From sequence record PP496439.1: a stretch of DNA of 64,000 bases; one strand, given 5' to 3'. Below the pieces are notes generated by a model that saw only the letters and a program-made list of their open reading frames with translations, was not told the origin of the DNA and did not search any database. The position numbers and the translations under genes are program-made. Each line of letters begins with the position of its first letter. Positions within the stretch are counted from its first letter, which is position 1. Shown here one piece after another: positions 4,306 to 60,501 of this stretch.

Positions 4306-4734
4306 ATGGCACCGCAAAAGAAAGCCAAGCCTGCACCCAAGAAGACAGTCCCCGGTCGAGACGATGGCAAGTTCGTCGCTCGGCTAGGCGCCCTCCGTGA
4401 TCTGGTTGCCGCACGGGCCAAGGAACAAGGCGTCAGCATGAACACATGGCTGGTCAGCGCAGTGGCTCAGGTCCTTGGCGTGGAAAAGGATGAAGATGGT
4501 AATCAGTTGCTCCTGCCTCATCTTGGACAGACCCAGCCTCCGTTAGTACCCGGCATGACGGTACGCAACAAGAAGGCACCCTATCAGGTGTTCCAAATCA
4601 ACACGTTCTCCATCAGCCGATCCGTTGAGGCCGCGAAGCAGGTGGATCAACGTCCGTTCATCAAGGTGTACGGTATCGATCTTAAAACCGGTAAGGGCGT
4701 CTCAGCGCAGTTGAACGACGTGCAGGTGGTGTAA
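4306..4734 (+). CDS. Arc/HicB-like ribbon-helix-helix DNA-binding protein
   Basis: GKFVARLGALRDLVAARAKEQGVSMNTWLVSAV matches the Arc-type RHH pattern (beta strand, helix, G-x-S-x-N, helix). Confidence 0.65.
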   Translation: MAPQKKAKPAPKKTVPGRDDGKFVARLGALRDLVAARAKEQGVSMNTWLVSAVAQVLGVEKDEDGNQLLLPHLGQTQPPLVPGMTVRNKKAPYQVFQINTFSISRSVEAAKQVDQRPFIKVYGIDLKTGKGVSAQLNDVQVV

Positions 4735-4735
4735 C

Positions 4736-5014
4736 ATGGGTACTCGGGCAGATGCATATCGCCAGCTCAATAAAGATATGACCAATACGTTGAACCGCCG
4801 CCAGCGTCTTGACCGAACCGTGGACATCCTGCTGCGAGCCCTTGGCGTGGACGACGATGCCGCCGACAAGATGTTGGACGAAGTACAGTCTTGTGACTTC
4901 CGGTCGATGGGGAAACTCCTGCAAGAGAAGTTCCCGGATAGCCCGGACATCGAGTGGTGTCTGAAGACGCATCAAGGTTACGACACCGTTCAAGTTGAGA
5001 GGGATAAACCATGA
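4736..5014 (+). CDS. Hypothetical protein (92 aa)
   Basis: ORF abuts its neighbours, ATGA overlap downstream. Confidence 0.6.
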   Translation: MGTRADAYRQLNKDMTNTLNRRQRLDRTVDILLRALGVDDDAADKMLDEVQSCDFRSMGKLLQEKFPDSPDIEWCLKTHQGYDTVQVERDKP

Positions 5015-5319
5015 AGGATCTTCAGGAACACTTCGCAGAGAACTTCGAACGTACTGACCTGACTGGCGCGATCCATTGGGCGCAGAAGTGGTACAAGGAA
5101 ATGGAACAGGTGCTTCCGGGCGAGGATAAAGCCCAGTTCACCTGTCGAGTAATGGCTGGGCACATTTCCGACTACCTGGAAGGGTACACCGGAGTGGAGA
5201 TAGAATCATATAATCAAGGCTCATGGCACGACAACGCTACCTACATGGACACGAAGTATGGTTCTACGGTCTACAGCTTTATGCTGGGTGGTGAGTACCC
5301 ACCCGTTGAGAAGTCCTAA
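5011..5319 (+). CDS. Hypothetical protein (102 aa)
   Basis: ORF with GAGG upstream and phage-like codons. Confidence 0.65.
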   Translation: MKDLQEHFAENFERTDLTGAIHWAQKWYKEMEQVLPGEDKAQFTCRVMAGHISDYLEGYTGVEIESYNQGSWHDNATYMDTKYGSTVYSFMLGGEYPPVEKS

Positions 5320-5323
5320 TTAC
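5311..5323 (+). promoter_or_regulatory. Candidate phage late-promoter motif AAGTCCTAATTAC
   Basis: Identical 13-mer occurs on the minus strand at 11627-11639; related AAAGGCCTAATTAT at 41987-42000 and CTAATTAC at 50268-50275. All lie upstream of gene starts. This copy overlaps a stop codon. Confidence 0.45.
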
Positions 5324-5357
5324 TGACTGATGATTCAACTCACTCAGGAAGATAGTT

Positions 5358-6038
5358 ATGACCATTTCGCTCTCGAAGTTCGTTGTCACCACGCCGATGA
5401 CCGCCAAGGTAGTTAAGGGTAAGAACATTGCCCTTACGGTCAAGGGTGACGATGCCTGTTCCCGTTGTGCGGAGTTCATCTCGGTCACCCCCGACGGCGA
5501 ACTAGACCTGTTCGCCCCGACCCATGGCGCGGCCACCGAGTCGGTACACAGAACCCGTACCGAACTGATGGAAGCAGATTACTGGGCTTTGGATTCTGCC
5601 GCCCACCACTGGCTGCGTCTGGCGATGACCGTCAAGTGCGTCAACAAAGGCGGCCGTGTCGTGATCGGCCAGTGCCATGTGGAAGATAGCAACAACCCGC
5701 TGATCAAGATCTTTTGGGACAAGGAGTCCATCAAGATCGGTTTCCGTGAAAAAGAAACCGAAGAGCCAGTGACCACCACGGTGTGCCGTGGCGTAGAACT
5801 GGGACAGCGGTTCACTCTGGCACTGCACATCACCAAAGCGGGCAGCGTCTCGCTGAACGTGTCGGTGGATGGCAAGAAGTACAACTTCACGGAAAAGATG
5901 GACCCAACGTGGAAAGACTTCAAGTTCAACTTCCACGCCGGCCTGTACAACCAGCTGGACTACTCGGACAAGATCCCCACCACTGACTGCTCCCGTGCGA
6001 CCATCCACACGCTGGACGTAGACCACGACGCAGCCTAA
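5358..6038 (+). CDS. Polysaccharide lyase family 7 (alginate lyase 2)-like protein
   Basis: The three PL7 motifs appear in order: RTELME (canonical RxELR), GQCH (QIH/QVH), FHAGLYNQ (YFKAGxYxQ). No signal peptide. Confidence 0.8.
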   Translation: MTISLSKFVVTTPMTAKVVKGKNIALTVKGDDACSRCAEFISVTPDGELDLFAPTHGAATESVHRTRTELMEADYWALDSAAHHWLRLAMTVKCVNKGGRVVIGQCHVEDSNNPLIKIFWDKESIKIGFREKETEEPVTTTVCRGVELGQRFTLALHITKAGSVSLNVSVDGKKYNFTEKMDPTWKDFKFNFHAGLYNQLDYSDKIPTTDCSRATIHTLDVDHDAA

Positions 6039-6136
6039 GCCCCACCAGCCGCCGCAGGCTGAATGATCCACTAGTGACATGGGCCATCGGTCCGGTTATC
6101 CACTAGCGTTCAGCCTGCGAGCGTATACGCGCCCAC

Positions 6137-6185
6137 AAAAAAAGCCCCACCATCCGGTCAAGTGCCGAGTGAGTGGGGCTTTTTC
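6137..6185. terminator. Bidirectional intrinsic terminator between convergent units
   Basis: AAAAAGCCCCAC-(22 nt)-GTGGGGCTTTTT, with A- and T-tracts on opposite sides. Confidence 0.8.
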
Positions 6186-6188
6186 GTC

Positions 6189-9044
6189 TTACATGGTTAC
6201 CAGAGTTACGAAACGGTTGGACATTGCGCGAGCTGTCAACAGAGTTGCCAACAGTCCGGTGTCTGCCCGATACTTCAACACCACCTTGTACACTTTGCCC
6301 GGTGTCAGACCAGTCGCCACGTATTCCCAAGAGCAAGTAGCGGCAGTCGCCGAGTAGCAGCTTCTGTCGTCACTGGCCGCGAGCACAACCGTAGCACCTT
6401 CGGTCATTGTAAAACTGACCCGAGTACCTGCTGCACACTGAGCCCCGAAGGTGACCCTGATAATCCCGGACAGCCCACACGTTATCTGCGCAGTCGGTCC
6501 TACCGTGGTCAGATCCACGAAGCCCACACTGAGAGTAGCCTCTGATGTGTTGAGCACAGCGTTGACCAGCGAGGTACTGTTCGGCGGAATGGCGTAGGTT
6601 CCATCTGCCTTGAGGAACTTGCCGGTGTCAGCAATCTTCGGAGCCGGAACCAGACCATGCTTGCCGTCGGCAGTTGCAGTAGATCCCACCATGTCGGCCA
6701 GCCCGGCCAGTACGTTCGCCATGAAGGTGGAACTGTCCTTGACCGACATCAGGCTACGTCCGTAGTCCGTGGTCAGGAATGCCTTCACCGAACTCGCCAG
6801 TGCATCCCCCATGAGCACAGCGTTCTCAGGAAGGGCCAACGCTGAGATGTTGCTAAGGACGGTAGCCTTGGCTTGATACCCCGACAAATCTGGGGGCGCT
6901 ACGACGGGTTGCCCACCTTCCAGCTCCACCGTGGTTACCTTGATGGCGTTGTCCGGCAGTGTAGGTTCCGTTACCAGCCCATTGGTTTCCGTACCTTTGC
7001 GAAGCTTGAACGTACCCGTCGTGTCCGCGTAGATCAAATCAATCCGTTGCTGACTGGTACCTGCTGCGGCAATCGTGAACGTCACCGAGGTACCGTTGAT
7101 GGTGTAGGTATTTCCTTTTATCCGCCACTGGATCTGAGTGCCACTGCGCAGCGTCAGGGTCACATTCAATCCCGTCTGTGTGACTTCCAGCGGGGTCAGC
7201 AATCCATCTGCCAGCCCGGCTTTCAACGCCAATGACTGCGTGATCGTATCCAGCGCCTGCTGAACCGTTTTGGAGATAGGCTTGTCCGTGTCCGGCGTGT
7301 TGTCTACCTTATCCAGTCCGATGTTTGTCCTCACCTGAACTTTCTGGGCGTCGGCCAAGGTCTGGGCGTTATACCGAACCAGCTCGGTGATTCCCAGATT
7401 GGTGCGTACCTGTGCACGCTGCTCTGCAGTGAACACCTGATCGGCATCGTACCGGAGGAAGTACCCGGTCAGCAGATCACGCAGCGACGGGCTGTCACCT
7501 AACCCCAACATCTTCAGGCCGAAATCGCTGTAAGGTATATTGACGTTGCTACCGTCCAGCTTGAAGCCTAGGATCGTGGCGGGCGTAGTTCCCATCTTGG
7601 CGAGCGCATCCAGCACGTTACTCTTGGCTTGGAACCCCGATAGGTCCGGGGGCGTAACCATCGGTTGTGCACCTTCCACAAAAACCGAGGTGATACGAAT
7701 GGTGCTATCGGGTAAGGCAGGTTCAACGGCAGTTACATTGGACTCCACGCCTTTGAGGACGTGCACAGTGCCGGTCGTATCCCCGTACAGAAGATCATAT
7801 CTCTGCATGCCAACGCCCGACGCGTCCAAGACAAAGGATACTGAAGGTGTAGGGGACGTGTAGGTAACTCCGTCGATCCGCCATTGCAGGTTGCTGCCGT
7901 TGTCACTCGCCAATCCAATCAGCAGGCCATTGCTGCTGGTCGAGATTGGAGTCAGCAATCCATCCTGAAGGTCAGCCTTTCCGTCCAGCAAGGCGAGGAT
8001 GTGGGACAACTGATGCAGGACCGAGGTGGGGATCGGCTTGTCGATGTCCGCTGTATTATCTACCTTGTCCAGGTGCAAGTCAGCCAGTGTTACAGCGCCT
8101 GTCAGCCCATTGATCGATGCGACGACCAGACTGTCCTTGAGCCGGTCCCAGCTTTCCCCGTTGGAGATAATCCAGTCCCCAATCTGCCAGTCCTTGTTGC
8201 CGTCGATACTGGTAGATCCCGCCACCTTGACGATGTAATACAGACCCTTGTTCGCTGTGCTAGCCGCAGGCATGGCTGGCAAGTTCTTATCCGCATCCCA
8301 CGTCCCCGCGTACCGCAGGCTACCGAGAATGGATTCCGGAAGATAGGATAGGTCGATCTTACGATTGCTATCCAGTGGCACCAGCCCACCTGACTGACCC
8401 AGCAGAAGAGCGTCCAACTTGGCGTCCAAAGCCATCTGTTGCGGTAGGGATACAGGCTTCTGAGAATCGGGGATATTGCTTACGTGTTCCAGGCCCACGG
8501 CGGCGGGGGTCAGCACATCTAGCAGACGGTCGCCCCGAATGTACTGCCGGAAGGTACCCAACGGGATCAGGGAGCTGATATCTGGTGCTGTCACCTTACC
8601 CAAGTCCGCGAGGGTTCCGTCGGTGTACATCACCATCAGGTTACCCGCAGCGTTGATCATCGACGTGGAGATACCCCGTCCAGCAGACCCTTTGACCATA
8701 CCCGCGTACTCTTGATCCCCGTTGGCGTAGGTGATCAGCAAGCGACCGTCAGCTGTCACTTGCGTTTTCTGCACCACCTTACCCGTGGTATCACTACCGG
8801 CATCCGAGGTGAGTTGATCCTGTGCTGTTAGGAAGGACTCGTAGCTGGTCATCAAAGACGGACGTGAGCAGATCAACAGATTACGGGTGACCAACTTGGC
8901 GAGTTCTTTCCAGTTCTTGTCAACAACTGCTAAAGACACGTAGTACCACTCGTCTACGCGCATGCGTTTTCCATTGACCTGTACGTCTTGCTTCACATTC
9001 GGAAATTTCCGGAAGCCTACTAATACGTTATCCATTATACGCAC
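6189..9044 (-). CDS. Accessory fibre/virion appendage protein (951 aa) with an internal duplication of about 190 aa
   Basis: Fibre-type motifs (DGRLLITYANG, LDKVDNTxDxDKP twice, GLVPAP) and a beta-rich C-terminus. The N-terminus is paralogous to 9113..11509. Confidence 0.75.
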   Translation of the reverse strand: MRIMDNVLVGFRKFPNVKQDVQVNGKRMRVDEWYYVSLAVVDKNWKELAKLVTRNLLICSRPSLMTSYESFLTAQDQLTSDAGSDTTGKVVQKTQVTADGRLLITYANGDQEYAGMVKGSAGRGISTSMINAAGNLMVMYTDGTLADLGKVTAPDISSLIPLGTFRQYIRGDRLLDVLTPAAVGLEHVSNIPDSQKPVSLPQQMALDAKLDALLLGQSGGLVPLDSNRKIDLSYLPESILGSLRYAGTWDADKNLPAMPAASTANKGLYYIVKVAGSTSIDGNKDWQIGDWIISNGESWDRLKDSLVVASINGLTGAVTLADLHLDKVDNTADIDKPIPTSVLHQLSHILALLDGKADLQDGLLTPISTSSNGLLIGLASDNGSNLQWRIDGVTYTSPTPSVSFVLDASGVGMQRYDLLYGDTTGTVHVLKGVESNVTAVEPALPDSTIRITSVFVEGAQPMVTPPDLSGFQAKSNVLDALAKMGTTPATILGFKLDGSNVNIPYSDFGLKMLGLGDSPSLRDLLTGYFLRYDADQVFTAEQRAQVRTNLGITELVRYNAQTLADAQKVQVRTNIGLDKVDNTPDTDKPISKTVQQALDTITQSLALKAGLADGLLTPLEVTQTGLNVTLTLRSGTQIQWRIKGNTYTINGTSVTFTIAAAGTSQQRIDLIYADTTGTFKLRKGTETNGLVTEPTLPDNAIKVTTVELEGGQPVVAPPDLSGYQAKATVLSNISALALPENAVLMGDALASSVKAFLTTDYGRSLMSVKDSSTFMANVLAGLADMVGSTATADGKHGLVPAPKIADTGKFLKADGTYAIPPNSTSLVNAVLNTSEATLSVGFVDLTTVGPTAQITCGLSGIIRVTFGAQCAAGTRVSFTMTEGATVVLAASDDRSCYSATAATCSWEYVATGLTPGKVYKVVLKYRADTGLLATLLTARAMSNRFVTLVTM

Positions 9045-9063
9045 CTATAACCGGATTGAAGAT

Positions 9064-9096
9064 AAAAAACGGGGAACCAGTTTAAGGGTTCCCCGT
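9064..9096 (-). terminator. Intrinsic terminator after the SGNH fibre gene
   Basis: 10-bp stem ACGGGGAACC/GGTTCCCCGT followed by a U6 tract on the minus strand. Confidence 0.7.
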
Positions 9097-9112
9097 GGGA
9101 CTCAGATTAAGG

Positions 9113-11509
9113 TTAGATATGCTTTCGTGGGGCGAACTGGCCGATACGAACCACCGAGTCTTGAGCAACGTTCTGCGCGAAGTAAACGGTAACACGAACA
9201 GTCACCGCAGTCTCCGTGCCGTCCCACGTGTAGCGCTGAGTCTCCAGCGATGTCAATGGAACAACAGCTGGCAAGGTGTAAGGATCTACGTACTTGTCAC
9301 CGTCTCGGAAGTAGAACACGGTCGATGCGGAGTTGACAGGTTTGGTTACCAGCACCTCAGCAGTTACTCCGAGAATACCGGACGTAGTACCGTCTACCCG
9401 AATCGCACCCACCAGACTGAACACGTCGCCCACGGCCATGTTGGCAAGTGAGAAGGTAGTCGTCGGGGAGAACGCCAGATACGCGGCGGCTACACTAGGT
9501 GTACCCCCGAACTGAATGACCTGGTATTCACCGGGGCCGTCAGTACGTACTTCTTTGCTCCAGGTGGTAGTCAACCCGGTGAACGCTGAGCCTGCAGCCT
9601 TGAAGCCAGTCGCAACCACCGAACCTGCTGTGGGGTTGACCGAAGCCGTAGACATGTTCGAGGAACCGAGCAGCAACGGATTCGCGCCGAGAGATCCGGT
9701 CTTGTTAACCGCGCTGTAGAGGTCACCCGAGTCAACTGGCAGGTCAACTGGCAGGAACTCCAGTCTACGAACCAATGGCAGGTAGGGTTGAGCGAGCTTG
9801 AACGCACCTTGTACGTGTGGGTGCAAGCCATCACGCAGGTCGGCTTCCACGATAGCGTCCCAGGTATTGACTACCGGAGTCCACTTCGACACCTCGTTGG
9901 TGATCCAGTTGTGCACTTCGATGTGATCTGCGAGGGCTTGGCCGGTAAGGACCTTATCACCAAAGCGAGGCGTCTCGTTACCCACGATAACGATCTTGCC
10001 AGCACGTTGCAGGCGGCGGATGATTGCCGTGATGTTACGCTTGGAATCACCTGCAGTCATTGCTGGGGCAGAAGCGGTACGGTCGTTGGTACTTCCGAGG
10101 AAGAACACGATATCACCCACCGCAGCCGCAACTGCCTCGACACGTGCCAACATCTCAGCAGTGTTCTGGCCGCCGATACCGAAGTTCAGCGTGTAAGGCA
10201 ACCGGATCACGCCGGTGAGCATGGCTACCCAGTTGTAGATACCATAGTTCTTGGTCGAGAACGCGGTGGACGATGCGGTTGCCGCTAGGCCTGTAACCGC
10301 GTGGTTCATCTCTGTACGGCTGTCACCAAAGAGGATAACTTCCCGGAGCAAAGGTCGGGACGGGAACACCAGCTTGTTCCAAGATCCATTGGATCGAGTG
10401 AACTGACCTGGAAGTGATGCACTCACATCCGAGATCAGACCGGATAGATCTGTTTTACTTGCCAGCCCTGCCAGATCTGTTCTACTCGCCAGATTAGCGA
10501 TTTCGGTCTTGGTCGCAGCCCCTGACACGCCCTGACTCAGCGTACTAAGCGAGGTGGACAACCCGTTGATCGTGTTGATATCTTGAGTGCCGGTATGAGT
10601 ACCCCGGTCACGCAGACTTGCATCGGTGTCGTTCTTGGTGGCTCCGACGGCAACGCCCGTGAGCTTGTCTTTGTCTGCGGTTACGTAAGCATTGGTATCA
10701 GGGTTACTTTCGTACAGCGTCTTTACCTGGGAAGCTGTCACCGGGGTGGCGCTGCTGGAACTCAAGACCCATTTGTTGTCCGACGCGTCCCATATGTATC
10801 GGGCTACATCTGCACCTGCAACGTCCACGTCAGCATAGTTACCAGCGACCGGCAGCGATACGCCTGCGGTGAGTGCGGACAGCGACGTGAACGTACCTCG
10901 GAACATCGGACCTTCGACACCCGCAAGCTTGGTCTTTTCCGCTGGGGTGAAGTTGGACTGGGACAGTGAATAGCCCGTCTGCTTTTCTACCTTGGTGTCC
11001 AACAAGTTCTGCAGGACGGCCCGAACGTAGGCATCGTCATAGTTGAACAGTTCGGCAAGCTTATTCTTCTGAGCCGCGTCGAAATCGTTGGTGGATAGCA
11101 TCTTGCCGGGGACTACGGCAACCGCACCGAGGTCAGCAGCCGTCTTCGGAATGTAGGGGGCATCAACCAGATCCCCGAACAACCCGGTGGTAGCCACCTT
11201 GGCGAGTCCGGGAATGTTACCGCCGCCACCGGAACCATCACCTGCCGCGACTGCCGCTGCCGTACTGGTGCTGATCGAGGGGTCCATGACCCGACGGTGG
11301 AACTCTTGAGCGTTGGAGTATGAGAGGATAGAGTCTTCGGAGCAAACCAACAAGCCCCGTGCTACCTGAGTCCTCAACATCTCAAAGCTTTGCAGTACGA
11401 ATTTTTCCGAAGGGTAGAAGAAATTACCCTCCGTCAAAGTAGTACCTTCGATGGACAGTCCCTTCGGGGCGGAGGCCGTTCGTTTGAAACCAATAGATGA
11501 TGCTGCCAT
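9113..11509 (-). CDS. Fibre/tailspike protein with SGNH/GDSL hydrolase (esterase/deacetylase) domain
   Basis: All SGNH blocks are present: FGDSRT, NFGIGGQNTAEML, GSTND, DGLHP. N-terminal fibre repeats (LSTNDF, EKTKLAGV). Confidence 0.85.
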   Translation of the reverse strand: MAASSIGFKRTASAPKGLSIEGTTLTEGNFFYPSEKFVLQSFEMLRTQVARGLLVCSEDSILSYSNAQEFHRRVMDPSISTSTAAAVAAGDGSGGGGNIPGLAKVATTGLFGDLVDAPYIPKTAADLGAVAVVPGKMLSTNDFDAAQKNKLAELFNYDDAYVRAVLQNLLDTKVEKQTGYSLSQSNFTPAEKTKLAGVEGPMFRGTFTSLSALTAGVSLPVAGNYADVDVAGADVARYIWDASDNKWVLSSSSATPVTASQVKTLYESNPDTNAYVTADKDKLTGVAVGATKNDTDASLRDRGTHTGTQDINTINGLSTSLSTLSQGVSGAATKTEIANLASRTDLAGLASKTDLSGLISDVSASLPGQFTRSNGSWNKLVFPSRPLLREVILFGDSRTEMNHAVTGLAATASSTAFSTKNYGIYNWVAMLTGVIRLPYTLNFGIGGQNTAEMLARVEAVAAAVGDIVFFLGSTNDRTASAPAMTAGDSKRNITAIIRRLQRAGKIVIVGNETPRFGDKVLTGQALADHIEVHNWITNEVSKWTPVVNTWDAIVEADLRDGLHPHVQGAFKLAQPYLPLVRRLEFLPVDLPVDSGDLYSAVNKTGSLGANPLLLGSSNMSTASVNPTAGSVVATGFKAAGSAFTGLTTTWSKEVRTDGPGEYQVIQFGGTPSVAAAYLAFSPTTTFSLANMAVGDVFSLVGAIRVDGTTSGILGVTAEVLVTKPVNSASTVFYFRDGDKYVDPYTLPAVVPLTSLETQRYTWDGTETAVTVRVTVYFAQNVAQDSVVRIGQFAPRKHI

Positions 11510-11626
11510 AATACTCTCCAGTTCGGTCCTGACTACGTTGTATGTCTATACCACCTTTGATTAGGTGGGACGGAATGCCCGAAAACAGATCTGGGAAATA
11601 ACGTCCTGATTTAACCTGGTATGCGT

Positions 11627-11639
11627 GTAATTAGGACTT
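11627..11639 (-). promoter_or_regulatory. Candidate late-promoter motif AAGTCCTAATTAC upstream of the SGNH fibre
   Basis: Intergenic, just downstream of a terminator, identical to 5311-5323. Confidence 0.5.
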
Positions 11640-11649
11640 TCAGACAAAT

Positions 11650-11682
11650 AAAAGCCCGCACGGCGGGGGCCAATGCGGGCTT
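11650..11682 (-). terminator. Intrinsic terminator
   Basis: AAGCCCGCA/TGCGGGCTT stem followed by a T-rich tract on the minus strand, directly after the 11686 stop. Confidence 0.7.
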
Positions 11683-11685
11683 AGA

Positions 11686-12894
11686 TTATGCAGAGGGTAC
11701 AGGATCCCAACTAACCTTGAATACTTTTCCGAGGTATTTGACAACCCGGCTGTAGTTCTTGGACTCGTCCATAATGCCTATCACGTAGTTGAGCACGTCA
11801 CCCCGGATCTGTGACTGACTCCACGCTTGGGGTACACCTTTCATGTAGTCCTGTGCTGGACCTGGAATCCACTTGGCGCTGGCTGCGGAGTGCAACGTCA
11901 GGTTAGTAGCACTCATCTCTGTCAGCTTGATCGCACCCAAGTCCCGGAGGACCAGCATCAAGGTGTTGATTGCCCGGTAGCTTGGCAGGTCCATATTGCG
12001 GCATACGCCTTGAACCGTGGCGAAGTCGATGAACTCATTGGGCTTGAACATTTCCGCAGGCTTAGGGTAATGATCGATAACCTTGAATGGTTCGTAGTAC
12101 GGCCCCTTCTCAGTCTTAGGCGGTTCCTTTTCCATGGATCTAACCAGATCGTCGATAGCCTCCGGACACATTGAGTTCTCACGTCGCGGTTCGCTGACGA
12201 TGGTTGCCAACACCTTAGGGGCATCCCACTTGGCTGGCTCTTTAACTGACAACGGCGGCGATGGGTCAACGGCCAGCACTGGCGCTGGAACTTCCGGTTT
12301 GGCCGGGGTCACCGGCTTCGCAGGCTGCGTTTTGGGCGGCTTTGCTGGTTTGGCCGGGGATTGTGTAGCTTTCGGCAGTTTGTTCAAGGCGGAGCGTTTC
12401 ACGGGCTTGCGAGTGGCGAGCATGATGTCGAGCGTGTGCTTGGTCTCAGGACACTTGCACGCGTTCATCAGATCCACGATGGCGTTGATCGGCATCATCA
12501 TGCTCTCAGCTTGCAATTCTCCGTCAGGAATCTTGATCGGTTTGCTTTGGCCTGGCTGACGTACTATCTCAAAGTGCAGCAGGTTATCAGCCAGTCCCGG
12601 AATGTTGGCCCAGTACTCACAGACGGCTTTGATGTCATCGTGAGTCTTCGGCAGTTGAAGCAGATGCTTGCGCAGGGACGCGCCGGAATAGGTGAGCCCG
12701 CAAGACTTGAGTGCCGAAGCAATCTGCTCGAATGAGGCGCCATACGTACGCATCCTGACAATACCCGGTAATGCCTTGTCCAACAACAACTGTACTTCTT
12801 TTCTTAACTTACGCGGCCCATCATAGTCGTACTCTTCAGCCAGCTTTAGGAACTGGTCAAGGTCGAACTGTGGTTTATCAGTTGTGTCTTTCAT
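11686..12894 (-). CDS. Hypothetical protein with N-terminal HTH-like domain and Pro/Lys-rich linker
   Basis: GASFEQIASALKSCGLTYSGASLRKHL resembles plasmid StbA/TraK-type HTH domains. PAKPAKPPKTQPAKPVTPAKP linker. Confidence 0.7.
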   Translation of the reverse strand: MKDTTDKPQFDLDQFLKLAEEYDYDGPRKLRKEVQLLLDKALPGIVRMRTYGASFEQIASALKSCGLTYSGASLRKHLLQLPKTHDDIKAVCEYWANIPGLADNLLHFEIVRQPGQSKPIKIPDGELQAESMMMPINAIVDLMNACKCPETKHTLDIMLATRKPVKRSALNKLPKATQSPAKPAKPPKTQPAKPVTPAKPEVPAPVLAVDPSPPLSVKEPAKWDAPKVLATIVSEPRRENSMCPEAIDDLVRSMEKEPPKTEKGPYYEPFKVIDHYPKPAEMFKPNEFIDFATVQGVCRNMDLPSYRAINTLMLVLRDLGAIKLTEMSATNLTLHSAASAKWIPGPAQDYMKGVPQAWSQSQIRGDVLNYVIGIMDESKNYSRVVKYLGKVFKVSWDPVPSA

Positions 12895-12956
12895 TTAGGG
12901 TAGTCTCAAAGTGGGAGGAACCTACGCATTGCAGGTCCACCCCGGTTGCTTCGGTG

Positions 12957-13250
12957 TTACTCTGACGAGACGTTGACGATGGTTACGCCTTCACATTCCT
13001 TCAGGCGATTGATGAACTCCTGAATAGCCTCTGCTGGGTCCACGTAGAATATCTGGCGGGCCACAGCTTCTACGTCGAAGAAGCTAGCGTCGGTATGAAC
13101 TGCCAGACGACTAACGCTTCGTATGGTGGACTGCTGACTACCCGATTCCGTATCTACATCAACGGACCCGGACAGGGTTACCATAAAGATAGTAACCTCC
13201 GTCGATGTTCCCGGCTCAGAATCCACATTTGGATCTTGTGTATCATTCAT
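12957..13250 (-). CDS. Hypothetical protein (97 aa)
   Basis: ORF whose start overlaps the recA stop. Confidence 0.6.
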   Translation of the reverse strand: MNDTQDPNVDSEPGTSTEVTIFMVTLSGSVDVDTESGSQQSTIRSVSRLAVHTDASFFDVEAVARQIFYVDPAEAIQEFINRLKECEGVTIVNVSSE

Positions 13251-22135: not shown

Positions 22136-23233
22136 TTACTCCGGGTTCCGGTCGAAGCCTTTGCCACGCATGGCGGTGAAGCTCTTCTCAACCAGCCGGT
22201 GGATCGATTTCGGCAGCTTCTCACCCATGGCGTACCAGCGCACGGCTTCACAGAAGAATTCCGATGGGTTCTTCTGGCTGTACTCACCGATAGGTGATTC
22301 CATGATGTTGACCGGCAGGTCAGTGGTCGGCCACACGGCGTCGGGCACCAGATTGCCGGACAGGAGGATGTTCAGCTTCTCCTCATCCAGATAGTGGTTC
22401 TCGCCGACGTACGTGATTATCGCTGCCAGAGCCGCTTCATCTTTCTCGTTCATGCTGGCGTAGGCCAGTTCGGTGTTGCCCTTCTTGATCAGCGTACGCA
22501 CGATCCGATCCAGCTGCTTCTTCGACGCCGTATCTTCGATTACGTACTTGTGGTACTCGCTGATCCAGAGTGCCTGAATGGAATCAGGCATCAGTCGGCT
22601 CATCAGTCCGTGGGCGAACTCATGCGCAACCAGATGCTGCACGTAGTTGACGTTCTGAGCTTCCTTCGGTCGCAGGCGAACACGGTCCATTGGATCTTTC
22701 GCCATGTTCACCGTGGTGTAGTCGCCGTCGTATTTACCTTTCGGCTCATGCAGCTCGATGCGCAGCGGGAAGATAGCGTCCAGCCCCCAGCCTTTGTACT
22801 GCTCGTACACCTTGTCCAGCCCGGTCATCAAACCTTTGAAGCTGGCTTCGTCCAGATCGGGGATGTAGCTGAACACCGGACCGTAAGGCTTGTCGTCGAA
22901 GCTGTCGTGGCGCAGCAGAATGGTGCAACCGTAGACGCTGCCCGGCTCGGGGCGTGGGCCAAGGTTGAGGATGACTTGAGCGTGCGGGACACGGGTGAGC
23001 ATCTCGTCGTCCAGCTCGTAGTCTTCCGACTTGTTCAACGCACCCAAGTCGGCGCCGGTGACTTCGGAACCTTTGAGGCTGTACACGCGCAAGGCCAGCT
23101 TGCGGTACTTGGTCTCACCGCCCTCGTCATCATTCTTGGCCGACTTGCTGATCTTGACGATCACGATATCCCCGGCGTTGACCGGGACCAACGGCACCTC
23201 TGGAGCTGCCTTATTACGGTCTTTCTTTTTCAT
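22136..23233 (-). CDS. Zincin-like metallopeptidase
   Basis: VAHEFAHGL (HExxH) plus a downstream EYSQKNPSEFFCE third-ligand motif of the ATLF/MtfA type. Confidence 0.7.
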   Translation of the reverse strand: MKKKDRNKAAPEVPLVPVNAGDIVIVKISKSAKNDDEGGETKYRKLALRVYSLKGSEVTGADLGALNKSEDYELDDEMLTRVPHAQVILNLGPRPEPGSVYGCTILLRHDSFDDKPYGPVFSYIPDLDEASFKGLMTGLDKVYEQYKGWGLDAIFPLRIELHEPKGKYDGDYTTVNMAKDPMDRVRLRPKEAQNVNYVQHLVAHEFAHGLMSRLMPDSIQALWISEYHKYVIEDTASKKQLDRIVRTLIKKGNTELAYASMNEKDEAALAAIITYVGENHYLDEEKLNILLSGNLVPDAVWPTTDLPVNIMESPIGEYSQKNPSEFFCEAVRWYAMGEKLPKSIHRLVEKSFTAMRGKGFDRNPE

Positions 23234-24223: not shown

Positions 24224-24270
24224 GGTAGTGCTCCTACAGGTAGACTTATGGGTAGTGTTGACCCATTGAA

Positions 24271-24891
24271 TTAGTAGGTATAACGGGGAGCTGCTGGAGT
24301 CTCAGGAACGACCAGTTGGTGCGTAGGGAAGAGTGAACCGATCACGATGCGGAAGTATTGGCCTTCGCCGCACTCCGGGATGTTGAACGACATGAAGAAC
24401 TTGCCGTCGTCCTTGTCGGTGCCGCTTTCCAGCCCCATATCCTCCCAGCGCAGGATCTTCTGAGCTTCCAGATACTTGGTATCAGCGATCTCGACGATGG
24501 TGACTTCGCGCAGCATGGTCATAAGGCTGGCGCTACCCCGCAGTGCCTTGAGTGGCAAGCGATAATACTCGTAGCACAGATCGTTGAGCACCTTGAGGAA
24601 CGTCACGTCGCTTACCTTGGGCAGCTTGGTGAAGTCCACCGTGTGAGAGTAACCTTGTGAACCGAGCTTGCCGCTGACGTTGCGAGACATAACAATCTCC
24701 CGTTGTGACATTCCCTTGTGGATTTTAGCCAAGGCTTCCCGAACGTCGTCCTGCGCATCACGGGCGGCTTGCTGCGCCTCGGTCAGCGGCTTGTGATGAT
24801 GGCCGCGACGAGAGCTGGCGTGCTGGAAGGCGTCGTTGTTGGACGCGTTGTGCTGAGTGCGGTATGCCGGGGTAGGTGCTGGAATAGTCAT
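24271..24891 (-). CDS. Hypothetical protein (about 206 aa)
   Basis: ATG at 24891; the track start at 24933 overlaps the upstream gene. Confidence 0.7.
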   Translation of the reverse strand: MTIPAPTPAYRTQHNASNNDAFQHASSRRGHHHKPLTEAQQAARDAQDDVREALAKIHKGMSQREIVMSRNVSGKLGSQGYSHTVDFTKLPKVSDVTFLKVLNDLCYEYYRLPLKALRGSASLMTMLREVTIVEIADTKYLEAQKILRWEDMGLESGTDKDDGKFFMSFNIPECGEGQYFRIVIGSLFPTHQLVVPETPAAPRYTY

Positions 24892-26002: not shown

Positions 26003-26026
26003 GGGGTACTCTTTTAGGTCGGGTAA

Positions 26027-27184
26027 ATGTTCGATAATTATGGGCTATTTACCGAGGTAATGGCAATGGCCAGCCACGTCAAGCAAGATTATGCAGCGAT
26101 CAGTGCGGCGCACCGTACGATCCTGCGGGAGATCGAAAGAATCCCCGGTCGTAAGAAGCATAAGCCGACCAACATCGAGATTCAGTGCCCGTTCCACCCC
26201 GGAGACAATACGCCGTCCTGCGGCATTTATATAGGCACGGGCGGCACGCTACCCCTAGGTTGGTTCTACTGTTTGGGTTGTGGTGCCAAAGGTCCGTGGA
26301 ATAAGCTGGCCGAGAAGTTGAAGCTGCAAACCATTGCAAGGTCTGATACCAAACGGGACAGTGCCTCCGTATCCAGTACGGAAATGGATCGGGCCAGATT
26401 GAAGTGTATGGGCGCTGACAAGACCGGGGTGGATCAGTATGCCAGTGTGATGCGTCTGGGAATGCCTAAGCCGTTCGACAGGCCCCAGTGGCGGGGTATC
26501 AGTGGCGCCTTGATGAGGGACTTGGGTGCACAGATAGCGGTGGATACGACCAGCAAACGACTGCGGGAGGTACTGCTACTGCCACTAACTCTATATGGGG
26601 AATTGGTTACTGTCATCAAGGCAGCGATGTACAAAGTGAAGGGTGACCTGAGCTATGTCGTGTATGACGAAGCAGATACCAAGACGAAAGGGTTGTTCGG
26701 CTTCGACCTAGTGGTGGATATGCTGAACAAAGGCAAGTATCAGTGGGTGGTGCTGGTGGAAGGTCAGCGGGACGCATTGCGCCTGATCCAGTACGGCATC
26801 CCGGCCATCGCCATCCTTGGCACCCAGAGCTGGACAGCGGAGAAGCGTGACCTGCTGGTGGGCTTGGGTACAGGGGTGGCCGTGATGATGGATGGTGACC
26901 CGGCAGGTGTGGCAGCGGCTAGGAAGATAATGCCGGACTTGCGCCGTCTAACAGAAGTCCGGGAAATTGATCTGATGCCGTTGACCGAGGAATTCGGACA
27001 GAAGGTGGACCCCGGCAACATGCCCATCTGGAAAATCAAGGAGCTGCAGGCGCTAAATGTCAGCAGCCGTAAACTTCGGGGGCGCAGAGTTCCCCGGTAC
27101 AGTCGCAGGCAGGAACGTGTCGATAAGCAAACACGTCAAGGCCAAGTTAATCGATATCAAGTTGAACTGGAGCAGTCAGAATGA
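26027..27184 (+). CDS. dnaG: DnaG-like DNA primase
   Basis: CHC2 zinc finger CPFH...FYCLGC; TOPRIM VLVEGQRDA and MDGDPAG. Confidence 0.9.
   Translation: MFDNYGLFTEVMAMASHVKQDYAAISAAHRTILREIERIPGRKKHKPTNIEIQCPFHPGDNTPSCGIYIGTGGTLPLGWFYCLGCGAKGPWNKLAEKLKLQTIARSDTKRDSASVSSTEMDRARLKCMGADKTGVDQYASVMRLGMPKPFDRPQWRGISGALMRDLGAQIAVDTTSKRLREVLLLPLTLYGELVTVIKAAMYKVKGDLSYVVYDEADTKTKGLFGFDLVVDMLNKGKYQWVVLVEGQRDALRLIQYGIPAIAILGTQSWTAEKRDLLVGLGTGVAVMMDGDPAGVAAARKIMPDLRRLTEVREIDLMPLTEEFGQKVDPGNMPIWKIKELQALNVSSRKLRGRRVPRYSRRQERVDKQTRQGQVNRYQVELEQSE
26045..26053 (-). promoter_or_regulatory. Candidate middle-promoter motif GGTAAATAG
   Basis: Related GTAAATA(C/G) at 17080-17087, 21451-21458 and 57192-57199, and GTAAATC at 15944-15950, all upstream of replication-type genes. 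Confidence 0.35.
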
Positions 27185-41986: not shown

Positions 41987-42000
41987 ATAATTAGGCCTTT
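41987..42000 (-). promoter_or_regulatory. Candidate late-promoter motif AAAGGCCTAATTAT
   Basis: Intergenic; near-identical to AAAGTCCTAATTAC at 11627-11640. Confidence 0.45.
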
Positions 42001-50230: not shown

Positions 50231-50302
50231 ACCGATATCCTCTTGTATGTAGCGGCGGCGCATACACGTAATTAGCGTAAGGGCTTAGTTGCCACACAGA
50301 CG

Positions 50303-57148: not shown

Positions 57149-57195
57149 ACTAGTGCTGCTCCTACTCTCGAATTGGCATGTGTCAATACGGCTAT

Positions 57196-57606
57196 TTACC
57201 GTTTGTTTTGCCGTGCGATCTTCTTCCGCTGCTCATCTTTATATAGGTGACCATGCAGGAAATTCTTGGAATGACACGCGGGGCATAACGGGATCAGGTT
57301 GGACTTGCTGTCGGTGCCGCCACGGGATGCCTGCTTGATATGGTGCAGCGCGAGCCGCCCACCGTCAGGGATCTTGCTCTGGTGAATGCCACAGCGACCG
57401 CAGCAGTTGTTGAAGACCGCTTTGACTTCCTTCTTACGGTCCTTCCACTCGTCCGTCTTGAGCCCGCCCAAGTACGTTGCCTTCTTGGCTCGCTTGACGA
57501 TACCGGTCTTGCTGATACCCGAACCAGTCGATGGGCGTGCAATCTTGATGCCCGGCTTGCCCGGTTTACGGGGGCCACTGATCCGGGCACGGGGCGGCGT
57601 TTTCAT
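57196..57606 (-). CDS. HNH endonuclease
   Basis: CGRCG...LHHIKQASRGGTDSKSNLIPLCPACH. Confidence 0.9.
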   Translation of the reverse strand: MKTPPRARISGPRKPGKPGIKIARPSTGSGISKTGIVKRAKKATYLGGLKTDEWKDRKKEVKAVFNNCCGRCGIHQSKIPDGGRLALHHIKQASRGGTDSKSNLIPLCPACHSKNFLHGHLYKDEQRKKIARQNKR

Positions 57607-59914: not shown

Positions 59915-59952
59915 GATTTATTACCTTGAGTTGCGTGTCCACATGCGTTAAA

Positions 59953-60501
59953 TTAGACAGGCGGGAAAGTGAAGGCCGTGTGGCGGGTTACTTCAGAGCC
60001 ACTGGCATTGATGGCGTCATCGATGAATGACAAGACCTCCCAGTCACGGTCTTCCGCATACCGGGTCAGCGTGATTCGGGCCAGATCGGGAAGGGATACC
60101 GGCGGACATTCAACCTCACTCAGTGGATCCGTTTGGGACACTGCACCCTGTAGCTCGTCAACCACCATCACGACGCCTGTGATGTTACCGCTGGCGTGCA
60201 TGTTCAGTAGGATGTCTACTAAGGTGCCTATGACGCGTGCCTGATCGTCTCGGTCCGCCATCAAGGCCATTACCACATTGCCGTAGGTTTCAGGGATCGA
60301 CAGGTTCCACACGGTGTCCAGCGGGTATGCCGGGGTAGGATCGATCAGCAGGTCAGCGTCCACTCGATCTAGATCGATGCGAAACTGCGGCATGTTAGGC
60401 AGCGCTACCGTGGCCTGCATTTTGTTGGGCGCCTGCAGTGACCAGTTCCACTGCAAGGGCTCGAAATAGGACAACACAACCTGTTTGGCTTGTTTAATCA
60501 T
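59953..60501 (-). CDS. Hypothetical protein (182 aa)
   Basis: ORF after a terminator, GAGG upstream. Confidence 0.7.
   Translation of the reverse strand: MIKQAKQVVLSYFEPLQWNWSLQAPNKMQATVALPNMPQFRIDLDRVDADLLIDPTPAYPLDTVWNLSIPETYGNVVMALMADRDDQARVIGTLVDILLNMHASGNITGVVMVVDELQGAVSQTDPLSEVECPPVSLPDLARITLTRYAEDRDWEVLSFIDDAINASGSEVTRHTAFTFPPV

Follow-up and report, generated by a model that had tools for sequence, protein, structure and literature searches.

Background

Enzymes that cut acetylated polysaccharides are in several known cases accompanied by esterases. In the pairs formed by CEX (6hh9/6hfz) with mannanases and by Axe2 with xylanases, the removal of O-acetyl groups lets the backbone-cleaving enzyme act, and pectin acetyl-esterase with pectate lyase is a further example of an esterase combined with a depolymerase. 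Pseudomonas alginate is also O-acetylated, by the AlgI/J/F/X pathway, and the acetylation hinders lyases. The present work concerns a candidate pair of this kind in a bacteriophage: an alginate-type polysaccharide lyase of family PL7 and a tail fibre with an SGNH esterase domain (SGNH1), which are encoded near each other in the genome of the jumbo phage Amme-1 and are each preceded by a copy of the same 13-nucleotide (nt) motif. The window analyzed is the 64,000-nt stretch formed by bases 62001-126000 of record PP496439.1 (genome length 202,198 bp), and positions given below are window coordinates unless the record is named; window positions 4500-12500 proved 100% identical to the record. The esterase has its fold matches among the same enzymes that make up the described pairs, but those pairs serve bacterial nutrient acquisition, whereas the Amme-1 genes are phage-borne, one of them on a tail fibre, and it is their linkage that suggests cooperation.

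The lyase resembles PA1167 of P. aeruginosa, A1-II' of Sphingomonas and the classical alginate lyases of phages (PT-6, Azotobacter phage; PMC5380687) in consisting of a single domain of ~225 amino acids (aa) with the beta-jelly-roll signature of family PL7, seen in the motifs R-x-E-L, Q-x-H and G-x-Y-x-Q, and it has in common with the PA1167 group a host that makes alginate, which P. putida produces under water stress (PMC4287175). It differs from the chromosomal PL7 enzymes of Pseudomonas in being only ~25-40% identical to them and in forming a deep branch. The fibre resembles the SGNH fibres and tailspikes of coliphage G7C (gp63.1), of N4-like P. aeruginosa phages (PMC12625404) and of Pectobacterium phage Possum (PMC9569702), and the solved phage fibre 9lna, in having an N-terminal attachment region and a distal SGNH esterase with a beta-sandwich, in its catalytic Ser/Gly/Asn/Asp-His residues, and in the exchange of its distal part between relatives. 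The similarity to solved fibres is confined to the profile and fold level of the SGNH domain, and the distal module of SGNH1 (phrog_6102) also exists as a free protein of 400-460 aa which is repeatedly linked to PL7.

Amme-1 (vB_PpuM-Amme-1) is a myovirus isolated on a derivative of P. putida PaW85. It belongs to a new jumbo-phage genus, CEPEST cluster G3, of which nine members have been sequenced and in which Peetri alone lyses P. syringae B728a (bioRxiv 10.1101/2024.03.26.586772). The DNA of Peetri is ~84% identical to that of Amme-1. The phage and its genes are already public, and both PL7 alginate lyases and SGNH fibres with a deacetylating action on O-antigen or capsule are well known; the record lists the lyase as a 'hypothetical protein' (Amme1_00093), SGNH1 as a 'lipase' (Amme1_00095) and their 948-aa neighbour as a 'minor tail protein'. 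New in the present work are the identification of the lyase, for which none of the nine G3 records has an annotation, two classes of promoter-like motif, and the recurrent linkage of lyase and esterase. A literature search found no account of a phage lyase-esterase pair that acts on alginate.

The lyase and the esterase fibre

The proteins and protein domains on which the argument depends are the following.

5358-6038, + strand: PL7 polysaccharide (alginate-type) lyase, 226 aa, Amme1_00093 (PF08787, 1.7e-37; phrog_31475, 2.8e-57)
9113-11509, - strand: SGNH1, modular tail fibre, 798 aa, Amme1_00095 (PF13472, 5.6e-14)
~11240-11509, - strand: SGNH1 N-terminal anchor, ~residues 1-90
10358-11239, - strand: SGNH1 fibre shaft, ~residues 91-384
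9758-10357, - strand: SGNH1 esterase domain, ~residues 385-584
9116-9610, - strand: SGNH1 beta-sandwich resembling a carbohydrate-binding module, ~residues 634-798
6189-9035, - strand: 951-aa fibre, annotated 'minor tail protein', with PHROG tail and tail-fibre matches
PP496439.1 188213-189847, outside the window: SGNH2, Amme1_00228, 544 aa (PF13472, 4e-12; phrog_19495/8480)

The lyase matches the PF08787 profile (Alginate_lyase2) with 129.8 bits (cut-off 29.7), its residues 3-223 corresponding to profile positions 1-225. It is a single domain with neither a signal peptide-like extension nor a fibre anchor, the latter being excluded because the domain covers residues 3-223 of 226. Its nearest solved relatives are PA1167 (1vav, 2.2e-12) and A1-II' (2cws), and in the alignment with these the residues R67/E69, Q105/H107 and Y197 are invariant in all seven aligned PL7 homologues; the lysine of the YFKAG motif is a histidine in the Amme-1 enzyme (FHAG). 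Homologues of ~223 aa and 35-41% identity occur as single chromosomal genes in many Pseudomonas species, P. putida strains among them.

The SGNH domain of the fibre scores 53.5 bits against PF13472 (cut-off 32.9). The four SGNH blocks (GDS Ser; Gly; GxND Asn; DxxH Asp/His) are present, and S397, G447, N475, D560 and H563 are invariant in 25-27 SGNH1 homologues; both enzymes thus look catalytically competent from their sequences. Residues 385-798 constitute phrog_6102, and an AF2 model of this region (pLDDT 87) consists of an SGNH alpha/beta/alpha fold followed by a beta-sandwich, for which the best Foldseek matches are the two-domain polysaccharide acetyl-esterases 6hh9/6hfz that act on acetylated mannans, CE3, Axe2 and the phage tail fibre 9lna. 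A single-sequence search of the PDB with SGNH1 returned noise only, and a profile search returned SGNH-domain matches. In NCBIfam neither PL7 nor SGNH1 nor SGNH2 nor the 951-aa fibre matched a family; the last of these is 948 aa as annotated and 951 aa in the open reading frame (ORF) listing, where it begins with a GTG at 9044.

The remainder of SGNH1 has the organization of a tail fibre. The N-terminal anchor is common to SGNH1, SGNH2 (~85 aa) and the 951-aa fibre (~70 aa), while the shaft has 59 database homologues that carry other ends (Peptidase_S74, Collar, T7-fibre, YadA, pectate-lyase). In the Peetri orthologue the first quarter is 86% identical and the distal half, although assigned to the same PHROG, only 23-26%. 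A homologue of the SGNH1 module, PhiPsa374 gp053 (34% identity), is an abundant virion protein by LC-MS/MS in a phage that depends on lipopolysaccharide (LPS) (PMC9796965). Anchor, shaft, phrog_6102 module, fold matches and virion homologue together identify SGNH1 as a modular tail fibre with a carbohydrate esterase. The initial annotation placed the esterase on the virion and described the lyase as soluble. The first placement is probably right, given the fibre-like build and the virion-protein homologue, with presence in the Amme-1 virion resting on homology; solubility of the lyase agrees with its single domain and lack of a virion anchor, and the enzyme would most likely be produced intracellularly and released when the cell lyses.

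Linkage of lyase and esterase across phages

Co-occurrence of the two genes across related phages, which the initial annotation had proposed as a check, is seen in the G3 genus, all nine members of which keep PL7 and SGNH1 ~3.1 kb apart. The same two families are also linked in phages unrelated to this genus. In AH02, a 39-kb phage of P. koreensis, a phrog_31475 lyase is followed after 130 nt by a full-length phrog_6102 esterase (L011:7998-10286), the pair lying between ninG and a holin gene, which is the lambdoid 'moron' position before the lysis genes; the AH02 lyase has a helical C-terminal extension of ~60 aa. In a further unrelated phage from IMG/VR, recovered from two metagenomes (L155/L156), lyase and esterase are separated by 12 nt (L156:598-2682) and lie just upstream of the terminase, portal, protease and capsid genes. 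The three linked lyases are 24-33% identical to each other and form long deep branches outside the compact cluster (54-62% identity among its members) that comprises the chromosomal lyases and those of Psa21-like jumbo phages, the latter being much nearer to the chromosomal Pseudomonas enzymes than the Amme-1 PL7 is. An IMG/VR scan with the AH02 lyase alone gave no match. The merging of one PL7 locus and one SGNH locus from the same sample (L050 and L053) into a single contig was tried and rejected, as the two do not overlap.

Among 50,697 phage records PL7 is found in 15, and the esterase module is found in 113 phage records. Given the rarity of PL7 among phages, three close linkages with one esterase family are an unlikely coincidence, a judgement made from counts uncorrected for phylogeny. 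Because this linkage recurs in three unrelated phage lineages, it appears that esterase and lyase act on a common O-acetylated polyuronate, most simply alginate; this would be the single most likely function of the two genes, and it is put forward as a tentative reading. SGNH1 would then be a fibre-borne polysaccharide O-acetyl-esterase that strips the acetyl groups from the polymer, which PL7 would cut afterwards, and the recognition of O-antigen that infection needs would be the job of other fibres. The motif class and its positions, the enzyme families with their catalytic residues, the modular build of the fibre and the gene linkage are directly observed; from these we infer the promoter function and timing of the motif, the virion location, the shared substrate and the order of action. 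A more far-reaching version, which is possible but less likely than not, holds that PL7 and phrog_6102 are an old recurrent two-enzyme unit with which Pseudomonas phages deacetylate alginate and afterwards cleave it, and that in Amme-1 the esterase has been grafted onto a fibre.

The alternative that has to be taken most seriously is that the two proteins function independently, a possibility that is real without being the favoured one. SGNH1 would in that case be a receptor-binding fibre of the G7C gp63.1 kind which deacetylates O-antigen or LPS, PL7 would be a host-derived accessory gene at the end of an early-type block, their proximity would reflect accessory-gene hot spots, and the common motif would signify nothing beyond membership of a large promoter class. 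SGNH tail fibres that act on O-antigen or capsule are well described (PMC12625404, PMC9569702), Amme-1 has a second, different SGNH fibre in SGNH2 (present in four of the nine genus members and absent from Peetri), and the virion homologue gp053 belongs to an LPS-dependent phage, PhiPsa374, that is without PL7. Against independence stand the tandem pairs of the two further phages, whose gaps of 12 and 130 nt are hard to obtain by chance given the rarity of PL7, and the position of the SGNH-linked lyases on old divergent branches, which are not those of recent host captures.

A considerable body of evidence weighs against a shared substrate, much of it in favour of independence. G3 phages fail on mutants that lack O-antigen (wbpL or wbpM), a dependence that characterizes the genus; the literature search found neither an O-antigen structure nor data on O-antigen acetylation for KT2440/PaW85. 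Peetri has a different distal SGNH module, although its PL7 remains 85% and its 951-aa fibre 89% identical. Such a pattern is typical of a receptor-specificity module, and the chemistry of alginate varies little between hosts. AlgX and AlgJ, the alginate-specific SGNH-like proteins, are not among the top PDB matches of SGNH1 in profile or fold searches. The partner is missing at most PL7 loci and at most SGNH loci: more than 100 phage records have the esterase module without PL7, searches up to 10 kb from 41 IMG/VR lyase loci and up to 8 kb from 80 chromosomal lyase loci of Pseudomonas found no SGNH module, and no PL7 was found near 19 other IMG/VR and 35 metagenome SGNH loci. In the 25 kb of Psa21 that were read the lyase lies among tRNA genes, and that of phiK7A1 belongs to the replication module, with 40 kb between it and the esterase. 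In Amme-1 itself PL7 and SGNH1 are convergent with a fibre gene between them, and are not in tandem. The motif copy in front of PL7, which is treated below, overlaps the end of the preceding ORF and lacks the downstream CAT that is typical of most sites, having CTG instead, and a sigma70-like promoter located 6.5 kb upstream could simply supply PL7 by read-through.

The 13-nt motif at its two sites

The initial annotation had drawn the connection between the two genes from an exact 13-nt repeat, AAGTCCTAATTAC, which is indeed present at both sites and which occurs just twice in the window and in the entire 202,198-bp genome.

5311-5323, + strand: motif copy 1, with core CTAATT at 5316-5321; a class-A (CTAATT) promoter-like site
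11627-11639, - strand: motif copy 2, with core CTAATT at 11629-11634 and the full extended consensus CTAATTacacgCAT
11647-11667, - strand: terminator-like hairpin CCCGCCGTGCGGG followed by CTTTTATTTG, which ends the gene at 11686-12894

Copy 1 lies upstream of PL7, its end being 34 nt from the ATG at 5358. Nine of its 13 nt are coding; they belong to the ORF at 5011-5319, whose final two codons and TAA stop (5317-5319) they comprise. SKa-4 and Aura have lost or replaced that ORF, as have, by coverage, Illi-2, Lauda and Pori-4. Homology restarts ~15 nt before its stop, and the motif and the PL7 leader are therefore kept. Copy 2 is intergenic, as had been stated; it lies in the 176-nt region upstream of SGNH1, 117 nt before the ATG at 11509, directly after the terminator of the upstream gene at 11686-12894.

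The significance of the match does not follow from its length. The window contains 272 exact 13-mer pairs, compared with ~116 in Markov simulations, while the number of chance matches expected between the two upstream stretches is ~1e-4 by our own arithmetic. It is the position of this pair, together with the genome-wide behaviour of its core, that makes it non-random. The identity between the two sites ends at exactly 13 nt on either flank, and for this reason the boundary of a duplicated cassette was rejected as an explanation. Among relatives both sites retain only CCTAATTAC, site 2 of Peetri reading AACCACCTAATTAC and site 1 of Aura reading TAGATCCTAATTAC.

The 176-nt region upstream of SGNH1 (11510-11685) is ~95% identical in Peetri despite the replaced distal half of the gene, and this long leader may carry further regulation. 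It holds a second CCTAAT inside a CCACC...GGTGG hairpin, behind which comes TATAGACATA. No Rfam family rose above noise when 4500-13000 was scanned, so that the conserved leader does not belong to a described class of RNA.

Two promoter-like motif classes

The core CTAATT has 26 copies in the genome when both strands are counted, and 14 of these lie upstream of a gene in the orientation of that gene, where 0.9 would be expected (binomial p = 3e-14, the oriented gene-upstream space amounting to 3.5% of the sequence). Control hexamers of the same base composition have only 7.6% of their copies in upstream space. A fifteenth site lies upstream of gene 00003. Most sites are 40-55 nt before a start codon, often right behind a terminator, and their wider consensus is roughly AAG-N2-CTAATTAc-N3-gCAT, in which the flanks are weaker than the core, with AAG placed two or three bases ahead of it and A, A, G and CAT behind it. 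The genes that follow are mostly structural or late-looking, including those next to the terminase, portal and protease genes, baseplate and tail genes, the head-tail module, both SGNH fibres (SGNH2 having CCTAATTA 43 nt upstream) and PL7; ribonucleotide reductase and a helicase are the non-structural exceptions. Peetri retains CTAATT at 11 of 12 alignable sites, and its non-homologous replacement cassette carries its own CCTAATTA.

24269-24274, 41989-41994, 50270-50275, 59951-59956, - strand: other oriented upstream CTAATT sites of the window, before Amme1_00110, 00129 (baseplate region), 00136, 00143
17377, 36022, 61489: intragenic CTAATT copies of the window

The 13-mer is accordingly to be described as two near-consensus copies of a CTAATT promoter-like element that marks at least 14-15 transcription units, and the earlier interpretation of the motif as a signal specific to the two genes is not supported. 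A dedicated operator or promoter of a two-gene anti-biofilm regulon, which is the form that interpretation took, is very improbable. The PL7/SGNH1 pair does have the longest contiguous identity (13 nt) of all class-A pairs, and the full 13-mer is unique to these two sites. Other pairs nevertheless have runs of 12, 12, 10 and 10 nt, so that the pair is the top of a continuum; the core stands at 12-13 other upstream sites, SGNH2 and baseplate genes have the same element, site 1 is partly coding, and the 5' AAGT is not kept at site 2 of Peetri or site 1 of Aura.

Equally hard to sustain is the opposite extreme, that the match is a coincidence or a recombination scar with no regulatory role. The abundance of 13-mer pairs in the window would allow it, as would the deletion and replacement boundaries that fall exactly at the motif in SKa-4, Aura and Peetri. 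It is contradicted by the oriented upstream enrichment of the core, by the conservation of the core in Peetri, and by the fact that non-homologous cassettes bring their own copy.

Late promoters of the T4 gp55 type consist of a single element that is read by a phage sigma factor. The CTAATT class is like these in being a short AT-rich element without a conserved -35 partner and in standing mostly ahead of structural genes, and Amme-1 too codes for a sigma-like protein (phrog_17569 at 2e-35; weak match to Sigma70_r2). It differs in its sequence, which is not that of the T4 late element, and in preceding some non-structural genes. CTAATT is probably the promoter element of one temporal class, probably the late one, and may be recognized by the RNA polymerase of the host once this carries the sigma-like factor of the phage. 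A scan for the sigma70 consensus yielded only weak 9/12 matches, at about the number expected from shuffled sequence, and no transcriptome of this phage genus was found in the literature. Because both genes carry the class motif, PL7 and SGNH1 are assigned to one large expression class, and the lyase and the fibre would be switched on together with that class of genes, probably late.

A second hexamer behaves in a similar manner. GTAAAT has 53 copies in the genome, 22 of which are upstream of genes in their orientation (p = 2e-18), and the class that it defines, GGTAAAT[A/G], is found mainly before replication, recombination and nucleotide/queuosine genes, usually 34-50 nt before the start. 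It is probably a separate promoter class, middle or early.

22731-22738, - strand: GGTAAAT[A/G] site
26022-26029, + strand: GGTAAAT[A/G] site
26046-26053, - strand: GGTAAAT[A/G] site
57193-57200, - strand: GGTAAAT[A/G] site

Terminators and gene layout

6139-6184, both strands: bidirectional intrinsic terminator (A7, GC-rich stem GCCCCAC...GTGGGGC, T5)
9059-9096, - strand: terminator-like hairpin (9069-9096; 10-bp stem with 7 GC pairs) and T-run between SGNH1 and the 951-aa fibre gene
6050-6123, + strand: long additional hairpin behind the PL7 stop and ahead of the terminator, very stable (150-nt fold z = -6.4)

The lyase and esterase units had been described as converging on one bidirectional terminator. 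The terminator at 6139-6184 is real, and it is common to PL7 on the + strand and to the 951-aa fibre gene on the - strand, so that the convergent partner of PL7 is this fibre gene and not the SGNH gene, which ends at 9113 with a strong terminator-like hairpin of its own behind it. The extra hairpin at 6050-6123 holds two copies of ATCCACTAG and has no Rfam match.

PL7 is the last gene of a co-directional block of 16 genes, which opens with the sigma70-like promoter and is not interrupted by a terminator. Because its motif copy is atypical and it stands at the end of such a block without an internal terminator, its timing is less certain than that of SGNH1.

Elsewhere in the genome, the hypothetical protein Amme1_00168 (928 aa; PP496439.1 143758-146544) is 32% identical to its 1010-aa counterpart in Peetri; this fast-changing large protein could be a candidate for a role in host range. 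Pfam and PHROG scans gave no match for Amme1_00168 and nothing useful for the genes of the replaced cassettes.

Biological significance

O-acetylation is a main reason that Pseudomonas alginate resists lyases and that alginate-rich biofilms are hard to break down. If the esterase of Amme-1 turned out instead to be an O-antigen deacetylase, it would be an unremarkable representative of a type of receptor-binding protein that is already known. Separately, the CTAATT and GGTAAAT[A/G] classes amount to a first map of regulation in a jumbo-phage genus that has only recently been described.

If the widespread 'lipase' family to which SGNH1 belongs is an O-acetyl-esterase of alginate or another exopolysaccharide that partners PL7, hundreds of phage genes would have to be re-annotated. 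The pair would then provide a natural set of enzymes for studies of matrix turnover, and it would account for the way in which phages of soil and plant pseudomonads pass the matrix. If, further, lyase and esterase form a recurrent two-enzyme unit, phrog_6102 would be the first phage-encoded family of alginate O-acetyl-esterases, and its carriage by many Pseudomonas phages would be explained.

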